Sequence record: LC765218.1
Length of the DNA stretch: 64,000 bases
Direction: 5' to 3' (one strand)
Part shown: positions 32,783 through 62,860 of the stretch, piece by piece
How positions within the stretch are numbered: the stretch's first letter is position 1
Layout of the letters: each line of letters starts with the position of its first letter
The notes under the pieces: model-generated
What the model was told of the DNA's origin: nothing
What the model saw: the letters and a program-made list of their open reading frames with translations, nothing else
The model's database searches: none
Made by a program: the position numbers and the translations under genes

Positions 32783-33043
32783 ATGAATTCTAACATCAAA
32801 CTGGTAAAAAACGAAGGCGAATGGCTGGTACAGAAAATGGAAACTCAAAACAAGTTTACGTTTTCGCTGGATGATGATACCAGTTGGGTGTCACTAGGAA
32901 TTCATCCTGACTCGGGTCTTCGTTTCGAATGTAATATGAGTGGTGTTCTAGAACGGGTTTATCGAGTGAAAGACAACATTGATCTTGATGTGGTTGAAAT
33001 CCCATCTAACCATGGTCTTGCACGCCAACTTAATATTCAATGA
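32783..33043 (+). CDS. Hypothetical protein
   Basis: GGAG RBS. Confidence 0.65.
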   Translation: MNSNIKLVKNEGEWLVQKMETQNKFTFSLDDDTSWVSLGIHPDSGLRFECNMSGVLERVYRVKDNIDLDVVEIPSNHGLARQLNIQ

Positions 33044-33444
33044 GGTTATCAATGTTTATTGAAACACTGGTTAACTTATGCATCATAGTTGCGGTAATTG
33101 CACTTGCTTATACAGTCGTTCGTTTTGTATTTAGGATCAGGAAACATTTCGTCGTAAATGTACTACATGTCCGAGGTGCAGTGAGTCGCAAAATACCAAT
33201 TAAAAATAAAGGTAATTGCTATGGGCTGCGTGATGGTAGGAACCAGTTCTATGTTGTAGTTAGAAATGGTGAAGTGACCTACCACAAAAACCTTACCAAT
33301 CTGGAGATAGATTTAATCTCCAACGATGCTGATACCCTGTACTTCAAATATCACCAAGTCTGGTTAAGAGGCGGTGGTGCTTATAAATTCGAGGAATTCG
33401 ATTTGAAGGGTAACAATAACGTTATTGATTGGAGGACAATCTAA
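33040..33444 (+). CDS. N-terminal TM hypothetical protein
   Basis: Hydrophobic anchor; ATGA-coupled. Confidence 0.6.
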   Translation: MRLSMFIETLVNLCIIVAVIALAYTVVRFVFRIRKHFVVNVLHVRGAVSRKIPIKNKGNCYGLRDGRNQFYVVVRNGEVTYHKNLTNLEIDLISNDADTLYFKYHQVWLRGGGAYKFEEFDLKGNNNVIDWRTI

Positions 33445-49803: not shown

Positions 49804-50505
49804 ATGTCGACAAAGATCATCAATCTTCCCTTCGTACAACTGGTCCTGAAACGCATCAGTGATTATACGTTGAATCATCAGTCTGGTTTGGATGATGTAC
49901 CGCATCTGTGCGTAAAGGTAAAACATAACAACGGTTATGCCTGGTTTGGCGTTAACATTCTCAACCACGAAACTCGGGCATGGTCCAGTTTCGAGGTCGA
50001 TGAAATGAAAGCTCGTTTCCTCGAAGCAATCAACAAACTGTGCGATGTAATCGAGATCGTTACAGATGTATCACGACTGATGGAATCTATCCAAGATGTT
50101 GTAACTGGTCGTAAGCGTCCCACCTTCTTTGGTGGTCATGGAAACGACATGATCCAAATGCACACGATCAATAACGTGCAGTTGGATGTATATCGCGAAG
50201 ACATCAATTCAGACACCATGTCTTACGGAGGCTTTGCAGCTGAAGTTCGAATCAATGGTCAGGACTATCCTCTGTTCCTGTATCATCGTGGCGTTATTCT
50301 CTATCACTACATCAATGAGGTAGATGCCAAACGACTGATCGTAGATTCGTTGACCAACAACTTTGGTGAATTGTTTGAGAATTATGAAGTTGATGAACAA
50401 CATGTAAATGTATTCCGTGTAGTTGAACGCACGCGGAATAAAAATCGTAATGAGGCGGACAGTAGAACCATCCGTTCTCTGACCGATAGCCGACGGAGCG
50501 CATAA
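49804..50505 (+). CDS. Hypothetical protein
   Basis: AGGA RBS. Confidence 0.7.
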   Translation: MSTKIINLPFVQLVLKRISDYTLNHQSGLDDVPHLCVKVKHNNGYAWFGVNILNHETRAWSSFEVDEMKARFLEAINKLCDVIEIVTDVSRLMESIQDVVTGRKRPTFFGGHGNDMIQMHTINNVQLDVYREDINSDTMSYGGFAAEVRINGQDYPLFLYHRGVILYHYINEVDAKRLIVDSLTNNFGELFENYEVDEQHVNVFRVVERTRNKNRNEADSRTIRSLTDSRRSA

Positions 50506-50927
50506 TGGCTTCTCAACTCATTGTTGTCGATCTCACTAAAGGTGGGCAAAAAGTCGACTTCAGTGAGTTGACTAGAGAGCCCACTGATAGTCTAATGTTC
50601 TATGTTGGAGAGGAACATGAGGCGGCCCATCTACATCAATTCTCCTATAACCCAGAATTCAGTAACTGGCAGAAACTAGAGTTCTGTATTTTCTGGGATC
50701 GTCAACATCGTCCTACAGCGGAAGATCCTCGTGTTGAAACTGACACTGAGTTATACATCCGTAAATTATGTAGACAATACGAAGTTGCCATCGATGGGTA
50801 CATGTTAGGTGTTAAGCACTTTGGACAACGTACTATCGTTGAGTTCAAAATGAAGGAAGAGATAGCTACTCCTCTAACTTTAGATTGGACAAAGGTCGAA
50901 CCTCCACCTAGGGAGGTAATCGTTTAG
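50505..50927 (+). CDS. Hypothetical protein
   Basis: TAATG-coupled ORF. Confidence 0.7.
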   Translation: MASQLIVVDLTKGGQKVDFSELTREPTDSLMFYVGEEHEAAHLHQFSYNPEFSNWQKLEFCIFWDRQHRPTAEDPRVETDTELYIRKLCRQYEVAIDGYMLGVKHFGQRTIVEFKMKEEIATPLTLDWTKVEPPPREVIV

Positions 50928-50928
50928 T

Positions 50929-51095
50929 TAAAGGTTACGCACTATCATATGCGTTTCCTGATCCTTTACGATAGCTCTTTTACAATTTGGTTAAGCTGGG
51001 CTGAAATCCAGCGATCGACACGATGGGTTAGAGTCCCATCACCTTTAGGGGTCTTCCATCGGCTGATCCCTGTGACTAGTGTCACAACCAACCTT
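50929..51095 (+). ncRNA. Candidate structured ncRNA-1 (multibranch junction)
   Basis: Intergenic; TTGGTT/AACCAA encloses four hairpins; terminator follows. Confidence 0.55.
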
Positions 51096-51098
51096 GAG

Positions 51099-51124
51099 CT
51101 CCCTCCCCTTGATCGGGGGAGGGG
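51099..51124 (+). terminator. Stem-loop terminator
   Basis: CCCTCCCC-loop-GGGGAGGG then TTTATTTT. Confidence 0.8.
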
Positions 51125-51157
51125 TTTATTTTGTCTCTCGTCAATAGGAACCTTCAA

Positions 51158-51625
51158 ATGGCAGTAACTCTTAAATTCCCTTTTATGCCGTCTCTTGAGC
51201 CAGCTGAGCTTACGGCTGTCATTCGCGATATCTATCTTGATCAATGCGCGGAGAAAGGCACGACTCCTCATCCCGAAGCATTTGAGCATCAGCCGGTTGT
51301 CCATGTAACGAATATGGTACATGGCGAGGGAGAAGATGTTCACTGGGCAGAAGATAGCGATAGTGAGAATCTACATATCTGCTTTACCTGCCCGCTGACT
51401 GGCGCACTTGCTAAGGTCGTCCAGCCTCTCAATTACACTGCCCCTATGAACAAGGTGTGTGTACGTCTCTGGATTGAGCATATGCTGCTCACCATGTTGG
51501 AACTTTTGCTGTTTACTCAAATGCAAGAACAAATTACAATAATGTCCAATGCAGCAAGCGAACGACGTACTATCATAACCAAATCCATCCATGCAAAGAA
51601 GGAGCAACTCGATGCAGCTCAGTGA
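51158..51625 (+). CDS. Hypothetical protein between the two RNA candidates
   Basis: AGGA RBS before ATG 51158. Confidence 0.7.
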   Translation: MAVTLKFPFMPSLEPAELTAVIRDIYLDQCAEKGTTPHPEAFEHQPVVHVTNMVHGEGEDVHWAEDSDSENLHICFTCPLTGALAKVVQPLNYTAPMNKVCVRLWIEHMLLTMLELLLFTQMQEQITIMSNAASERRTIITKSIHAKKEQLDAAQ

Positions 51626-52142: not shown

Positions 52143-52145
52143 AAG

Positions 52146-52172
52146 AATACTTGAGTTGTAATGATATACGAG
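52146..52172 (+). promoter_or_regulatory. Stable-RNA-type promoter motif
   Basis: AATACTT-N6-TAAT-N2-TATACGAG; 20/27 identical to the motif before tRNA-Thr. Confidence 0.65.
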
Positions 52173-52500
52173 GACTAATGTCCCAACAGAACAGAGGTCA
52201 CCCGGATCATCTCCCCTAAGGCTCCCCGTCGCCATATTAGGGTGCCGCAGTGACCTCACCTTATTCCCACTAGCTTTCGGTGTAAGTGGGCTCTCTCCGC
52301 ATAAGATCGGAGAGACTAACAGCGATCCATGCCAAAGGATCAAGCCGAAGCAGGTATATTGACTTGGCCGTCTTTATATCTGAAGTTACGACGGTTACTA
52401 CCTCCAGTTGAGAGGGGTATCCCCGAGTGGCGTTACCTAACCAGATGGGTGCCGACCCGTAATCGGTGCCTTAGCTGGCCAGCTTTCTGGTAAGGTAATC
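52170..52500 (+). ncRNA. Candidate ~330-nt structured ncRNA-2, unknown class
   Basis: GC-rich intergenic block with at least eight helices, a tRNA-type upstream motif and a terminator. Confidence 0.7.
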
Positions 52501-52509
52501 TAACGAATA

Positions 52510-52532
52510 GCCCGCTCCGTTGAGGAGCGGGT
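52510..52532 (+). terminator. Stem-loop terminator
   Basis: GCCCGCTCC-GTTGA-GGAGCGGGT-TTTATT. Confidence 0.85.
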
Positions 52533-52571
52533 TTTATTCCGTCTCAGCTTGTAAACAGGAGAATATAAAGA

Positions 52572-57975: not shown

Positions 57976-58053
<78 letters not shown>

Positions 58054-58094
58054 GAAATTTGAATTGAGTACTGGAATCTACATCACTGAATACT

Positions 58095-58121
58095 CTCGTA
58101 TACTATTAGACACGAAGTATT
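58095..58121 (-). promoter_or_regulatory. Stable-RNA-type promoter motif before tRNA-Thr
   Basis: AATACTT-N6-TAAT-N2-TATACGAG on minus strand. Confidence 0.65.
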
Positions 58122-59700
58122 ATTTTATTTCGTATTCGACTACGGGTGTTGTTTTAGATACATCACCACCAAATCGATAGACTCCATCGGATACAACTAA
58201 CATCTCTTCATACGAAGAAATAGCTGGGAAGGTATCTCCGATTAGTTCTGGCTCTTTATTAAGTTGCACCAAAGCTAATCGTGTTCCGGAGTTATTCGTC
58301 ACATAGATGTTATTACCGAATATGATTCCTCTATACGTCGAATATTTGTTGGCAGGCGCATTCAAAGGAATGACTTCAGTTGTACTAAAATCAGAACTAA
58401 TCTTTACGTAGTCCGTTGGCGAGATGTTTGTCCCACCTATTGTTAATCTACCTTGAGATGCAACGATAACTAATTCACCATTATCGTTAAATCCTAAATT
58501 ATGATGCCATAATTCAATTGGTAGAACATCAGCAATCATGCCGATTTCATATGTCGTAAGGTTAACTGTTATAATGTTCTTATGGATTTTATCACTGCGT
58601 CCAGAGAAACCACCAACAATGTACAGTATATCGTCTTTAACTATACTAGCTGTACGTTCGATGTAATATGCATCGACTAAACCTGGAATAGCAGCTAGCT
58701 TTTTAGTTTCCCATGTGTCGGTAGCTATCGTGTAAATATAAATAGTCGGACCAGTAGACAATGGGTTACCATGCAAAATCAACTTACCATTATTGTAAAC
58801 CATATTGGTTGTAGTTGTCTCGCCTTGGAACGGAACTGTAGATGGTAACTTGGTCCATGTTTTAGTATCTCGGTCTAACCGATGTAAGTCGGACATGAAC
58901 GTAGTAGGTCCTGTTGTATATCCACAGGCCATGTAAATATCGTTGTTATCCGAATCATACGCGAGTACTGGCATCCCACGTTGCGGCGGTGGATTTACAG
59001 TCGACAATACAGAGGTAATACCTTTAAGTTCCTTTGGCGGAATATATTCAAGTACCGGTCGCCATCCACGATAACTAGTAGCTTCTGTTGGCGGATGACC
59101 ATCGTAAATATAAAGGCCATTCTTTGCCTGAGGATGAGTTGTCGATGGTGAAAACTGTAGGTAATTACCATTGGTATTTCTATTAGCCGCCCAGTTATAA
59201 CTTCCGTTTCCGGCGCCTATAAGTTGTTCATCTGTGTACTTTGCCCAACTTCCTTTAGTTGTAACATTGCCAAAAATATCCCACAATTCAGAACCTTCAT
59301 TACCTTGAGTAGCGATATCCGAATAAGGATTTACTCCAGCATTCATTAGACGAACTTTAAACATGTTCCCATCGATTACAATAACTTTACTACCATCTAT
59401 TAAACCAGCCTCGTCAAGTTGGTTTGGACTAATGGAATGGAGAATAGCTGTCTTCGAATAATAAAGAATAACATTATTTCTAGATACTTTAATCCAACCA
59501 GCATCTGTATTTATAGTACCAATGGAGTCAAGCTCAACAAGTGTTCTTAACTGAGGGTAAGTTATAAACTTGTCGCTTGTCAACTCACCATACAGACCAA
59601 GTGTCGAATCACCTTGTTCAAAGGTAGATGGACCCGGTAGTTTATTTCCTGTAGCCTTAATGAGTGCAGACAATAATGATTCGAACATAATTTTATCCAT
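58120..59700 (-). CDS. Putative tail-associated protein: conserved N-domain plus kelch-like propeller
   Basis: MFESLL near start (59688); PGP..GDS.LG.YGE..FI..GWIK..FKVRL N-domain; six kelch-like blades. Confidence 0.7.
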   Translation of the reverse strand: MDKIMFESLLSALIKATGNKLPGPSTFEQGDSTLGLYGELTSDKFITYPQLRTLVELDSIGTINTDAGWIKVSRNNVILYYSKTAILHSISPNQLDEAGLIDGSKVIVIDGNMFKVRLMNAGVNPYSDIATQGNEGSELWDIFGNVTTKGSWAKYTDEQLIGAGNGSYNWAANRNTNGNYLQFSPSTTHPQAKNGLYIYDGHPPTEATSYRGWRPVLEYIPPKELKGITSVLSTVNPPPQRGMPVLAYDSDNNDIYMACGYTTGPTTFMSDLHRLDRDTKTWTKLPSTVPFQGETTTTNMVYNNGKLILHGNPLSTGPTIYIYTIATDTWETKKLAAIPGLVDAYYIERTASIVKDDILYIVGGFSGRSDKIHKNIITVNLTTYEIGMIADVLPIELWHHNLGFNDNGELVIVASQGRLTIGGTNISPTDYVKISSDFSTTEVIPLNAPANKYSTYRGIIFGNNIYVTNNSGTRLALVQLNKEPELIGDTFPAISSYEEMLVVSDGVYRFGGDVSKTTPVVEYEIK

Positions 59701-59822
59701 TGAAAAGTGACTGTTTACAGAGGGGTGGCTGTATAGAACTTCACGTTCCTACTCCCTTTCCGTCTAAGGCCTCCCCATTATAGGTACTTACCAAAAGACT
59801 AAATCATACAATTTGCAACATA

Positions 59823-59845
59823 AAGCCCGCCTTTCGGCAGGCCTT
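59823..59845 (-). terminator. Stem-loop after tRNA-Leu, GAAA loop
   Basis: AAGGCCTGCC-GAAA-GGCGGGCTT on minus strand. Confidence 0.75.
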
Positions 59846-59852
59846 ATTAAAA

Positions 59853-59938
59853 TGGTAGGAGCAGAGGGACTCGAACCCACAGTGCCTTACGACGGCTGGA
59901 CCTAAACCAGCTGGCTATACCAATTCGCCTATGCTCCC
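59853..59938 (-). tRNA. tRNA-Leu(TAG)
   Basis: GGGAGCA..GCTGG-TT-TAG-GT-CCAGC, long variable arm, GTTCGAGTC, ACCA. Confidence 0.95.
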
Positions 59939-59963
59939 ATGTAAAATAGCGCTTAACGCTAAT

Positions 59964-59992
59964 TCTTACATATAATCACTATACCAGTATTT
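59964..59992 (-). promoter_or_regulatory. 29-bp conserved element before tRNA-Leu
   Basis: AAATACTGGTATAGT-N5-TATGTAAGA; same as 62875-62903. Confidence 0.75.
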
Positions 59993-59996
59993 CTTT

Positions 59997-60935
59997 TCAC
60001 GGGTTTTCTGGATCGTAAACCCACAGGTCATTATGATAGACACCATTTGTATAACCACCAGATAAATAAATCTTACCGTTATAAACTTCCATATTGGCGT
60101 AGAACCGAGTAGGCGGCATCTTACCAGGAGGAAGAATTATATTTGACCATGTGTCAGTTTCAATATCGTAAACACTGAAAATATGATCGTTATTAATAGT
60201 GTTAGGAGTAGAACTTGTACCAGATTGACCACCGAATACATAGATCTTATTGTTAAGAGCTACGGCAGAATGTCTGTTCCTATTTACAAGACCATTCTTG
60301 TGGGGTGTCCATGTATTGTTGTCGACATTATAACTTCTGAATGTGGCAACTGACGTATTAGCTGTTTCATAGCCACCTAACGTGTAGAGGCGTCGACCAT
60401 GACTTGTTAAAGTCGCATAACGAATTTGATAAGGTGGTGTCAAGTTAGCTACTGTGAAGTTATCGGTATTATAGCTCTTAAATTCATACATAATACCTTG
60501 TGCACCGTTACCACCAAATAGGTACACCTTATTATCAATAGCTGACATGCAATGACTGTTACGTACGGCCAATCCACCATTAGAGCGTGTTACAGGTGTA
60601 ATTGTCTCACCATCAATCGTAAACTCAATCATCGTGTTTGTATCAGCAGAACCAGTGTATCCACCGAATACATAAAACTTGTTATCAACTAAACCACCAG
60701 CTGCACGTAAATTAACGTTTGCTCCTGCCGGTAGTTCTTTCCATTCGTCTGTTAAGAAATCATAGACGGATACAGTATTGAACGCGTTAGTGGTAGCACG
60801 TCTACCACCGAAGATATAAAGTTTGTCTCCTACGACAACAGAGGTTGACTGGTTTCTTCCGACGTCGGGTCCCTGTAGCTGAACCCAACCTTGCTTACTT
60901 TTATATTCCCCAATTCCTAACAATGCTTCAAACAT
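59997..60935 (-). CDS. Six-blade kelch beta-propeller protein
   Basis: MFEALLGI start; six YxFGG-type kelch repeats. Confidence 0.9.
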   Translation of the reverse strand: MFEALLGIGEYKSKQGWVQLQGPDVGRNQSTSVVVGDKLYIFGGRRATTNAFNTVSVYDFLTDEWKELPAGANVNLRAAGGLVDNKFYVFGGYTGSADTNTMIEFTIDGETITPVTRSNGGLAVRNSHCMSAIDNKVYLFGGNGAQGIMYEFKSYNTDNFTVANLTPPYQIRYATLTSHGRRLYTLGGYETANTSVATFRSYNVDNNTWTPHKNGLVNRNRHSAVALNNKIYVFGGQSGTSSTPNTINNDHIFSVYDIETDTWSNIILPPGKMPPTRFYANMEVYNGKIYLSGGYTNGVYHNDLWVYDPENP

Positions 60936-60969
60936 AACGATTACCTTTCGTCAAAATCATAACATATAA

Positions 60970-60985
60970 CCTCCCCGAAGGGAGG
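60970..60985 (-). terminator. Stem-loop terminator, UUCG on minus strand
   Basis: CCTCCC-CGAA-GGGAGG on plus strand. Confidence 0.8.
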
Positions 60986-60995
60986 CTTTATGTTT

Positions 60996-61211
60996 TTAAT
61001 CTTGATTAGCTAACCATTCTTTAAGAAGAGCAACGAAATTGACAGGCTCTTTTACAATTTGACCATTTCGACAAACTGGTACTTTTTCAATATTCGGGTC
61101 ATCCATAATTGGTCGATACCATTCCTGGAATTTCTTATTCAGGTCCCGACTAAAAATTTCCGTAATGAGTGCGCCAAGTCCATCGTCTTGGAACGGAGCG
61201 GTTTCGTACAT
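60996..61211 (-). CDS. Hypothetical protein
   Basis: GAGG RBS before ATG 61211. Confidence 0.55.
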   Translation of the reverse strand: MYETAPFQDDGLGALITEIFSRDLNKKFQEWYRPIMDDPNIEKVPVCRNGQIVKEPVNFVALLKEWLANQD

Positions 61212-61498
61212 TTTTGTTCCTCTGTAGTTATAGCAAGTTTTACAAGGGCTAGCCGGTGGGTTACCCAAGCTGTAATGAAATCTCCACGTGTAGTACAATC
61301 GTAGCTTACATGTGCTTGATATTCAGGATGGTTAATATTGAATTTATCTATGACCTTAGACCGTAGATAGTCTTCGGCTGCTTTTGTTGACATCCCTTCT
61401 ATATTTGGGAATTCTTCAATAAGTAGCTCTGACAACATTTTATTTCTTGAAGCTAGGTCTATATCAGCCTCAGTATGACATGGCATGAAAGCTGTCAT
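61139..61498 (-). CDS. Hypothetical protein
   Basis: GAGG RBS. Confidence 0.55.
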   Translation of the reverse strand: MTAFMPCHTEADIDLASRNKMLSELLIEEFPNIEGMSTKAAEDYLRSKVIDKFNINHPEYQAHVSYDCTTRGDFITAWVTHRLALVKLAITTEEQKCTKPLRSKTMDLAHSLRKFLVGT

Positions 61499-61500
61499 GG

Positions 61501-61692
61501 TTACCTCTTTACATCCTTTGACATACTGTTATATAGCCCAGTATAAAACGACATAAAACTCTCCTTATCGGAGAGTCGTATATCGGATATCAAAACCAGT
61601 CTCTTTTTGATCATGACATCCATCGTGAGGTGACAGTTAGTGGAACTGAAGAGACACCTTTCCGTATGGTCGGCCCAATCGACTTCCCTCAA
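61501..61692 (-). CDS. Hypothetical protein
   Basis: Packed ORF. Confidence 0.45.
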   Translation of the reverse strand: MREVDWADHTERCLFSSTNCHLTMDVMIKKRLVLISDIRLSDKESFMSFYTGLYNSMSKDVKR

Positions 61693-61998
61693 TCATCGGC
61701 TTACCACTATTAGCCTTTGGTTTCCAGGTGCTATAAATGGTCACATCGAAATACTACAGTCTACTGGGCCTAATGTGAGATGTTTCTACAGGCAGCTTTC
61801 GATGAAGTAACTTTGTTCGTTACATACTGTAACCAACAGAGTATTTTTTTTAATCTAACGTACAGAGTACACCGATTAAACGGAACGGGCAGGTCAAGAC
61901 CCACCAAATAGCTTCAAATACTGCACCAATTATTTCACCAACTACATTGAGGGCTTGTCGCCCTTTATGCTGTTTTTCTTTTTTGACATCGGTCATTA

Positions 61999-62169
61999 TT
62001 AACAAACCATAATTGGTACTTCAAGACCATTGCGTTCACAATGTTCTTCAAGTTTACGTTGAGCTTGGTTGAACTTAGCTAGTTCTTCAAGAGTTTTCTT
62101 TTGGTTATCAGCAAGTTGTTCTGGACTCTGACAATCGCGAATTGCTTTTATAGAAAGATTAGGAATCAT
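61999..62169 (-). CDS. 56-aa hypothetical protein (not in ORF track)
   Basis: MIPNLSIKAIRDCQSPEQL..; follows stop at 62173. Confidence 0.5.
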   Translation of the reverse strand: MIPNLSIKAIRDCQSPEQLADNQKKTLEELAKFNQAQRKLEEHCERNGLEVPIMVC

Positions 62170-62172
62170 AGG

Positions 62173-62709
62173 TCACCCGAAAGATTTACGTGCATCTGCT
62201 TCATTATCAAACAAACGACAACCCCAGATATAAGCTGCATCCAGTTCACCCCGGAAACAGTCTTTAACTTCTTTACTAGCTGTCTTCATGTAGTTATCTA
62301 CTGCATCTAAGAAAGAGTAACCTTCAGCTTTACCTACAAAGCTAGCTATACTGGATTCACCAGTAGCTCGATGACCTTCTTGCCAAATCTCATACTCTTT
62401 CTTCTTAAGTACAGTACCACGTTGTTCTTCTAAGACTTTCATTACTTGATCAAAGTCTTCATAACCCATGCGACTGAGACGAGCAATGAGACTTTGCTGT
62501 GCTTTACCATCTAACAACGTCTCATGCATCTCTTTGGTGGCTTCTAGGTACACGCCGTTTTGGAGGAGGATCAAGAAGTCATTAAACTTCATATATTCAC
62601 CACCCTCGTTATCTAAGACCATCTTAGTCTCATTGACAGTGTCCTGTGGACTCAATAGAATCTTAGGCACTGCGGGCGACCAACGTTTAATCAAACTTAA
62701 TGCTGACAT
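62173..62709 (-). CDS. Hypothetical protein
   Basis: AAGGA RBS before MSALS. Confidence 0.65.
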   Translation of the reverse strand: MSALSLIKRWSPAVPKILLSPQDTVNETKMVLDNEGGEYMKFNDFLILLQNGVYLEATKEMHETLLDGKAQQSLIARLSRMGYEDFDQVMKVLEEQRGTVLKKKEYEIWQEGHRATGESSIASFVGKAEGYSFLDAVDNYMKTASKEVKDCFRGELDAAYIWGCRLFDNEADARKSFG

Positions 62710-62739
62710 GTTATTTCCTTTTGTAATAGTTGACATAAA

Positions 62740-62759
62740 GCTCTCCCCGAAGGGAGAGC
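62740..62759 (-). terminator. Stem-loop after tRNA-Tyr, UUCG on minus strand
   Basis: GCTCTCCC-CGAA-GGGAGAGC on plus strand. Confidence 0.8.
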
Positions 62760-62771
62760 ACTATGACGCAT

Positions 62772-62860
62772 TGGTGGAGAGGACTGGACTCGAACCAGTA
62801 ATGCCCGATACGGACGGCTGATTTACAGTCAGCTGGGGTTACCAATTTTCCTATCTCTCC
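62772..62860 (-). tRNA. tRNA-Tyr(GTA)
   Basis: GGAGAGA..GCTGA-CT-GTA-AA-TCAGC, long variable arm, GTTCGAGTC, ACCA. Confidence 0.95.

Follow-up and report, generated by a model that had tools for sequence, protein, structure and literature searches.

A candidate small non-coding RNA with a transfer RNA T-arm-like hairpin, conserved downstream of PHIKZ287.1-like genes in several genera of nucleus-forming phages

The Chimalliviridae are nucleus-forming, phiKZ-like phages that use polymerases of their own for transcription within a protein-walled nucleus. RNA biology in these phages has barely been charted; to our knowledge, few small RNAs have so far been described in phiKZ and 201phi2-1, and none of them has a known function. 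Small non-coding RNAs that carry a module resembling part of a transfer RNA (tRNA) include the Y-RNA-like YrlA and the T4 'species 1/2' RNAs, whose functions are uncertain or of scaffold type; these have a fuller tRNA-like domain (an acceptor-like stem, D- and T-like arms) and adjoin rsr or lie inside a tRNA cluster. Bacterial small RNAs (sRNAs) derived from 3' untranslated regions (3'UTRs) are made from an internal sigma-70 promoter, use the terminator of the messenger RNA (mRNA) and act through Hfq-dependent seeds. Within the phage family itself, 17 candidate short RNAs running from a promoter to a terminator have been reported in phiKZ (PMC10914365) and 11 in 201phi2-1 (PMC11512511), one of which is conserved across genera (PMC10914365; PMC11512511). 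Here we describe an element at another locus, located at 50951-51132 (+) of a 64,000-nucleotide stretch of sequence record LC765218.1 (the window), which by its sequence identity belongs to a BRkr/PA1C-type Pseudomonas jumbo phage (Pawinskivirus, Chimalliviridae). We read this element as the gene for a non-coding + strand small RNA of about 180 nucleotides (nt) that forms a family across several chimallivirus genera, an interpretation that we regard as about evenly balanced between holding and failing. The element resembles 3'UTR-derived sRNAs in that it stands directly after a coding sequence (CDS), with a promoter-like motif past the stop codon and a terminator common to the operon, the difference being that the polymerase would here be the phage's own. 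From YrlA and the T4 RNAs it differs in having a less complete tRNA-like module. With the short RNAs of phiKZ and 201phi2-1 identified by ONT-cappable-seq (sRNA005/sRNAgp182) it shares the phage family, the promoter-to-terminator layout, the placement ahead of a gene and a position conserved across genera (PMC10914365, PMC11512511); sRNA005 differs in locus and sequence and lies ahead of a tail gene homologous to phiKZ gp182, and a T-arm-like hairpin has not been reported for these RNAs. The literature searched held no description of the locus or of a T-loop RNA in these phages, and the small RNA family, a phage sRNA with a tRNA-derived module, is described neither there nor in Rfam.

The element is intergenic and fills the gap between two + strand genes, an upstream gene coding for a PHIKZ287.1-like protein of 140 amino acids (aa) (50505-50927, stop codon 50925-50927) and a downstream gene coding for a protein of 155 aa (51158-51625, with a ribosome-binding site ahead of its ATG at 51158). 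A first-pass annotation, made from the letters of the window alone, had proposed a structured non-coding RNA element at this site and had listed its helices; every one of these helices was found in the sequence, and the proposal itself was borne out, for the + strand, by the fold, by covariation and by the broken reading frame described below. Folding of 50929-51135 (+) with ViennaRNA gave a minimum-energy structure in which a junction-closing helix (TTGGTT 50987-50992 / AACCAA 51086-51091) surrounds four hairpins and is followed by a terminator, with an energy of -75 kcal/mol compared with -56.4 +/- 4.4 for 200 dinucleotide shuffles (z = -4.2, 0/200 as good). Hairpin 1 (50995-51012, GCTGG 50995-50999 / CCAGC 51008-51012) resembles an anticodon arm, hairpin 2 (51022-51040, GATGGG 51022-51027 / CCCATC 51035-51040) has a stem of 6 base pairs (bp) and a T-arm-like loop of 7 nt (51028-51034), hairpin 3 (51047-51071, AGGG/CCCT) has a stem of 6-7 bp and a loop of 11 nt, and hairpin 4 (51072-51085, GTGAC 51072-51076 / GTCAC 51081-51085), with a loop of 4 nt, abuts hairpin 3 and the closing helix without a spacer. 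Upstream of the junction, an outer 5' helix (TAAAGG 50929-50934 / CCTTTA 50963-50968) is present in the sequence, as is a small inverted repeat (ACGCA 50937-50941 / TGCGT 50950-50954) that holds the tetranucleotide TATG (50948-50951). The intrinsic terminator identified by a terminator scan (51100-51132) consists of a hairpin (51100-51124) of 10 pairs, 7 of them G-C, with a loop of 5 and a T-rich tail; it is found in every homologue, with compensated changes in its stem, so that the U-tailed terminator of its own previously ascribed to the element is confirmed. The reverse strand folds about equally well (z = -4.2), so that energy alone cannot assign the strand, which was identified as the + strand from the T-run after the terminator and from G.U pairs that are kept in the relatives.

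Eleven full homologues of the element were found, in Pawinskivirus, PhiPA3, Psa21, D6, RVTF4 and metagenomic phages, and hairpins 2 and 3 covary among them. Pairs of these two hairpins were counted in a 53-column alignment of the 11 sequences comprising 13 pairs: standard pairs occupied 91.6% of the cells compared with 76.5% after shuffling (0/500 shuffles reached this value), 7/13 pairs showed changes on both sides, and the covariation score was 0.432 compared with 0.142 for shuffled alignments (0/500), dropping to 0.02-0.13 when the 3' partners were slid by 1-3 columns. The slid controls, together with the occurrence of several distinct pair types, argue for a real constraint on hairpins 2 and 3. 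Hairpin 2 was found in all 11 homologues; three of its six pairs are compensated (A-U/U-A/C-G, U-A/A-U and G-C/A-U), one stem position being A-U in five sequences, U-A in three and C-G in two; the two G-C pairs that adjoin the loop do not vary. Four of the seven pairs of hairpin 3 changed on both sides, including a position that is G-C in five sequences, C-G in three, U-A in two and A-U in one; a G.U pair is retained in 7/11, several letters of its loop are invariant or almost so, and RVTF4 has a divergent, longer hairpin in its place. RNAalifold, run on nine and then on eleven sequences, retained hairpins 2, 3 and 4 and the terminator.

The remaining helices vary more between phages. Three stem pairs of hairpin 1 are compensated within the genus, the hairpin that PhiPA3 has at this site differs completely in sequence, and no counterpart aligns in the D6/Psa21/RVTF4 group. 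The stem of hairpin 4 is invariant within the genus save for one change from G-C to G.U in 1/5 sequences, its loop varies, and other genera have a hairpin of other sequence and length at its site. In the closing helix, five pairs do not vary among the genus-level sequences (5/5) and the sixth is disrupted in 2/5, with no covariation, and no counterpart of this helix was found outside the genus (PhiPA3, D6, Psa21, RVTF4). Being invariant in the genus and absent elsewhere, the closing helix indicates that the junction is not the conserved unit. The covariation check that had been called for thus supported hairpins 2 and 3 and failed for the closing helix, and the five-way junction emphasized in the first-pass annotation is at most a plausible predicted fold of Pawinskivirus; the helix TAAAGG/CCTTTA likewise is not kept in contig L045 or in PhiPA3. 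The architecture of the 3' domain varies between phages, while the T-arm-like hairpin and hairpin 3 are kept.

The position of the element is conserved, all full homologues (11/11) lying after the gene for the 140-aa PHIKZ287.1-like protein. In each phage, a PHIKZ287 homologue is followed by a homologue of the 140-aa protein (49% identity in PhiPA3, about 40% in phiKZ-type phages, 33% in RVTF4, 29% in D6, with a further homologue in Psa21 and weak homology in 201phi2-1 and Noxifer) and then by a gap of 141-449 nt, and a recognisable homologue of the element was present in the gaps of PhiPA3, RVTF4, D6 and Psa21. Metagenomic members were added by a gapped pattern scan, which among chance matches returned L020 (with six identical copies) and L021, and by a large protein search, which returned the Pawinskivirus-like contigs L044 and L046 and the incomplete contig L045; single-protein searches with the upstream protein gave PhiPA3 itself or no match. 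The length from TATG to the terminator in the relatives is 172-205 nt. phiKZ and PA7 have a 94-nt version (AF399011 262641-262781 in phiKZ) that consists of TATG, the conserved 5' segment described below, an unrelated small hairpin and a similar terminator, without the T-arm domain. A model of hairpins 2 and 3 found one copy per phage locus, no further copy in the 64-kilobase (kb) window, and no match in the phiKZ, PA7, 201phi2-1, Viktualia and Noxifer loci or in the 18 bacterial contigs that matched a 5' pattern by chance. Those contigs came from a scan of bacterial genomes with a longer gapped 5' pattern, whose 18 matches belonged to unrelated taxa, none with the RNA module; in IMG/VR, the exact 19-nt T-arm pattern gave one chance match, and an 18-nt 5' pattern gave PA7 itself and chance matches in coding sequence.

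Sequence identity is higher in the element (84-93%) than in either flanking gene (64-81%). Relative to the window, HPP-Temi shows 92.9% identity in the element, 77.5% in the upstream CDS and 80.1% in the downstream CDS, L046 shows 91.2%, 81.1% and 75.2%, and L044 shows 84.2%, 69.7% and 63.5%, respectively. In a three-phage alignment, the element with about 50 nt of each flank had 93% column identity, compared with 81-90% identity for the whole 1.3-kb region. No BLASTP similarity was seen across groups when the proteins encoded downstream in the window, PhiPA3, the D6 group and phiKZ were compared; genes that are unrelated between genera argue against a leader serving one gene and tie the element to the upstream gene pair or to itself.

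Of all parts of the element, a pyrimidine-rich 5' segment (50954-50986 (+)) is the best conserved; it is predicted to be largely unpaired, with an unpaired probability of about 1 at 50978-50986. The first 45 nt of the RNA were 97.8% identical in HPP-Temi, 100% in L046 and 93.5% in L044 (93.5-100%, where the flanking genes are 64-81% identical), and letters of the segment are common across genera, phiKZ included. Since the short version of phiKZ keeps TATG, the 5' segment and the terminator and not the T-arm domain, the 5' segment appears to be the core of the family. TATG itself is found 3-24 nt upstream of the segment in every relative (ten TATG-anchored sequences, L044, L045 and L046), and the arms of the inverted repeat around it change in a compensated way between genera. 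The late promoters of phiKZ, which are used by the non-virion RNA polymerase, carry TATG, with its G as the start site (PMC4666361; PMC12809450). By analogy, transcription by this polymerase may start at G 50951 as the putative +1, and the predicted RNA would extend from there to the end of the U-tail of the terminator (50951-51132).

In the mechanism we propose, the RNA would be made from its own TATG start, by read-through from the PHIKZ287/287.1-like genes, or by both routes, independent expression being what we infer from the arrangement of these signals, and transcription would stop at the intrinsic terminator. The 5' segment would be the working end, contacting a target RNA or protein, with purine-rich sites such as ribosome-binding regions as possible RNA targets, and the 3' hairpin scaffold, organised around a T-arm copy that probably descends from a phage tRNA gene, would shield and present it. 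This division of labour between segment and scaffold is conjectural. The 18-mer of the 5' segment is unique in the window when up to three mismatches are allowed. The most accessible part of the element (50974-50989) has a perfect 16-nt complement at 61046-61061 (-), extendable by G.U pairs and with a chance expectation of about 1e-3, inside a 71-codon open reading frame (ORF; 61211..60996 (-)). This site is identical in phiLBG22 and BRkr, and PA1C is 99.7% identical over the 361-nt query; it carries two changes in PS119XW and four in HPP-Temi, where the RNA segment is unchanged. It was rejected as a target, as it drifts at the rate of the surrounding coding sequence and is probably due to chance or specific to a lineage. 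A perfect 13-nt complement to 50953-50965 was also seen at 33133-33145 (+), in an ORF at 33040-33444 (chance about 0.06). Inspection by eye also suggested that the 5' segment might pair over 4 bp with the loop of hairpin 3, a contact that was discarded because of its insufficient length and inconsistent retention.

Several points weigh against the element being a small RNA gene. TATG is a motif of four bases that is necessary and not sufficient for a promoter (PMC4666361); the covariation comes from 11 related sequences of few clades, with shuffles that are uncorrected for relatedness; the search of the 64-kb window yielded no conserved target complement of the 5' segment; and the conservation of the 5' segment could reflect a role as DNA, such as that of a promoter-proximal element, or in some clades a short peptide.

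The strongest of the competing explanations, which we nevertheless consider unlikely, is that the element is a 3' end-module of the upstream operon, whose structured domain and terminator end transcription in cis and guard the 3' end of the mRNA from exonucleases without any role as an sRNA. The terminator scan found no terminator in the interval from the stop codon (50925-50927) to the element, which means that transcripts of the upstream genes have to enter it, and it would also form their 3' end; moreover, the same gene pair always lies upstream, and the genes downstream differ. A plain terminator hairpin would suffice for such a task, however, and conservation is highest in the unpaired 5' segment rather than in the hairpins that would be protective, while the conserved TATG suggests a separate start. 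If the element were no more than such a module, the finding would be ordinary.

A 5' leader with a conditional terminator, in which a sensed signal or protein would set the balance between termination and read-through into the downstream gene, is a somewhat less probable explanation. It would account for the order of the features (promoter-like motif, structured RNA, terminator, ribosome-binding site and the gene at 51158), and there is precedent in short 5' untranslated region RNAs that arise by premature termination, 17 of them in phiKZ (PMC10914365) and eight in 201phi2-1 (PMC11512511). Against it stand the downstream genes, which are unrelated between genera, and the absence, on inspection of single and consensus folds, of any conserved pairing that competes with the terminator. 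No riboswitch or leader family of Rfam matched, and assignment to a riboswitch or attenuator class was rejected on these grounds, no shared antiterminator pairing having been seen by inspection.

The candidate small RNA stands out by hairpin 2, which has the features of a tRNA T-arm. The first-pass annotation had seen no T-loop here, which is incorrect: the hairpin at 51022-51040 has a G-C-closed stem and a T-loop-like loop of 7 nt, the length of which is invariant in 11/11 homologues. Loop positions 1, 2, 4, 5 and 7 are invariant in 11/11, and position 3 is A in nine sequences, C in one and G in one. In tRNAs, the equivalent position of the T-loop pairs with the D-loop, and its variability in hairpin 2 fits the absence of a D-arm from the element. 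A core of 13 bases differs in one letter from the T-arm of the tRNA-Leu gene of the window (59866-59878 (-)), and the PhiPA3 copy of hairpin 2 equals the tRNA-Leu T-arm over this core. Local alignment of tRNA-Leu with 50993-51041 picked out the hairpin 2 stretch, with 13/14 positions identical (1/2000 shuffles as good), and the T-arms of the window tRNAs were weak partial matches of a covariance model (R1) built from the element. The likeness to the T-arm (RF00005; tRNA-Leu, -Thr and -Tyr of the window) thus comprises the 7-nt loop, the invariant G-C closure and a covarying stem, and the differences are the 6-bp length of the stem and the variable loop position 3. As the five stem pairs of hairpin 1 also have the letters of the tRNA-Leu anticodon stem, the element may plausibly descend from a tRNA gene.

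The element as a whole is not a tRNA. Four hairpins lie inside its closing helix, which is 5-6 bp long and has letters other than CCA after it, and hairpin 1 lacks the conserved 7-nt loop of an anticodon arm: in close relatives the loop has 5 or 6 unpaired nt if the G.U or U.G pair that closes it is assigned to the stem, and 7 or 8 nt when counted from the 5-bp stem, and its letters differ between them. The absence of a CCA end, noted before, was upheld, and an acceptor stem, a D-arm and a conserved anticodon loop are absent as well. ARAGORN, one of the checks that had been suggested, called no tRNA or transfer-messenger RNA (tmRNA) at the element or in the loci of 10 relatives, and the Rfam tRNA model (RF00005) gave no match to the element even at E <= 10. 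Covariance-model searches with Rfam, likewise suggested before, assigned no family to the element or its relatives: with Rfam 15 at the gathering threshold, three tRNAs alone passed in the whole window, the best sub-threshold match over the element reached 20.7 bits compared with a threshold of 40 and rested mostly on the terminator, and the loci of six relatives had no match. A tmRNA was rejected, as none was called by ARAGORN or matched in Rfam.

A bolder version of the small RNA reading, which we think quite improbable, would have hairpin 2 act as a working mimic of the tRNA elbow that couples a regulatory RNA to the tRNA-handling machinery, with T-loop modification enzymes, RNase P, the ribosome or RNA export from the phage nucleus as candidate partners and the conserved 5' segment as cargo or effector. 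If true, this would be a new class of phage riboregulator in nucleus-forming phages. The earlier suggestion that the element is a tRNA mimic or a decoy for host anticodon nucleases or other tRNA-directed defences fared worse and now seems very improbable. The 13/14 identity of hairpin 2 to the T-arm of a phage tRNA-Leu and the anticodon-stem letters in the 5-bp stem of hairpin 1 speak for it, but the loop of hairpin 1 differs in length and letters even between near-identical phages, hairpin 1 has no aligned counterpart in D6, Psa21 and RVTF4, and the element, without acceptor stem, D-arm and CCA, is rejected by both ARAGORN and the Rfam tRNA model.

An ORF of 72 aa overlaps the element (50949-51167 (+)) and had been named as the possible alternative; we judged it not to be a gene, because its frame is not conserved in the relatives. 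It is broken by single-nucleotide indels, with 1 nt lost from the hairpin 1 loop in HPP-Temi, 1 nt gained in the terminator in phiLBG22 and 1 nt gained in the 5' part in the metagenomic L044; in phiKZ a stop codon immediately follows the corresponding ATG, and in D6 a stop occurs at the third codon. Neither this ORF nor one of 125 aa on the other strand matched a PHROG family. On these sequence comparisons, the element is non-coding. In RVTF4, D6, L020, L021 and Psa21 (L013, L014, L020, L021, L040), the 5' segment is entered by a short ORF of 7-18 codons that has a Shine-Dalgarno-like stretch ahead of it; indels of 1-2 nt alter the length and frame of this ORF within the D6/Psa21/RVTF4 clade, and phiKZ has no such short ORF. 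That the product is a protein or peptide, encoded either by the 72-aa ORF or by a leader reading frame of about 7-22 codons on the 5' segment, is accordingly a highly unlikely explanation. Short ORFs do lie over the segment (22 codons in PhiPA3, 7-18 codons with a Shine-Dalgarno-like stretch in D6/Psa21/RVTF4), and a comparison of the window with D6 and PhiPA3 shows spacing differences within the segment that are multiples of three; set against this are the 72-aa frame broken in three close relatives, the indels of 1-2 nt that shift the frame inside the segment within the D6 group, the retention of the nucleotide letters in phiKZ with an ATG directly before a stop, and the lack of a PHROG match. 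Least probable of all is a decaying, functionless remnant of a tRNA gene, since the resemblance of hairpin 2 to a T-arm, and the order hairpin 1, spacer, hairpin 2, which is colinear with anticodon arm, variable region and T-arm in the phage tRNA-Leu, are outweighed by conservation above that of the neighbouring genes, by compensated changes in two hairpins and by retention in at least four phage lineages.

With covarying helices, conservation above its neighbours and a tRNA-derived module, the element is a candidate with stronger comparative support than most. It provides a defined RNA to seek in existing and new transcriptome data and an example of a tRNA part that would have been re-used within another phage RNA.

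Over the 1.3 kb around the element, the window is 100% identical to Pseudomonas phage BRkr, 99.6-99.8% identical to PA1C, PS119XW, phiHQ and HHBS36_1, 89.7% to phiLBG22 and 81.2% to HPP-Temi. These phages belong to the genus Pawinskivirus and have genomes of about 300 kb, and among these records Chimalliviridae is named in the taxonomy line of phiHQ only. phiLBG22 (L002 3106-3734) was 99.8% identical to the upstream gene and only 94% identical to the element when compared with window positions 50505-51132, and returned to 100% identity at 60940-61300; this mosaic pattern suggests a recombination boundary near the element. Pfam and PHROGs indicated no function for the flanking proteins, the sole functional match near the locus being an AAA ATPase encoded two genes further upstream.

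A second non-coding gap of about 430 nt (52143-52571 (+)), with an intrinsic terminator at its end (52511-52531), adjoins on its downstream side a PHIKZ289/PhiPA3 gp355-like gene and has no Rfam match. Its first 33 nt and an inner stretch of 18 nt match the 449-nt gap after gp424 of 201phi2-1 (L015:2379-2827) and also Viktualia, and its start motif recurs in a gap of Psa21. The 449-nt gap of 201phi2-1 does hold a T-loop-like hairpin; owing to its homology to this second gap, 201phi2-1 was rejected as a member of the family described here.

Three tRNA genes (Thr-TGT, Leu-TAG and Tyr-GTA) lie at 57976-62860 (-) of the window, interleaved with ORFs on the - strand. In HPP-Temi, the tRNA-Leu gene directly follows a small ORF, without the gene for a 312-aa protein that sits between them in the window. 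Two observations concern the gene upstream of the element: in L044 (1817-2239) its homologue was called in two pieces (89 and 41 aa), which corresponds to one interruption, and in the phiKZ record (L016, AF399011) PHIKZ287.1 is annotated as a CDS of 52 codons (2256-2414). The tblastn match of the 140-aa protein in L016 spans 2001-2411 and PA7 annotates the gene at full length, suggesting that the gene model of PHIKZ287.1 in phiKZ may be too short.

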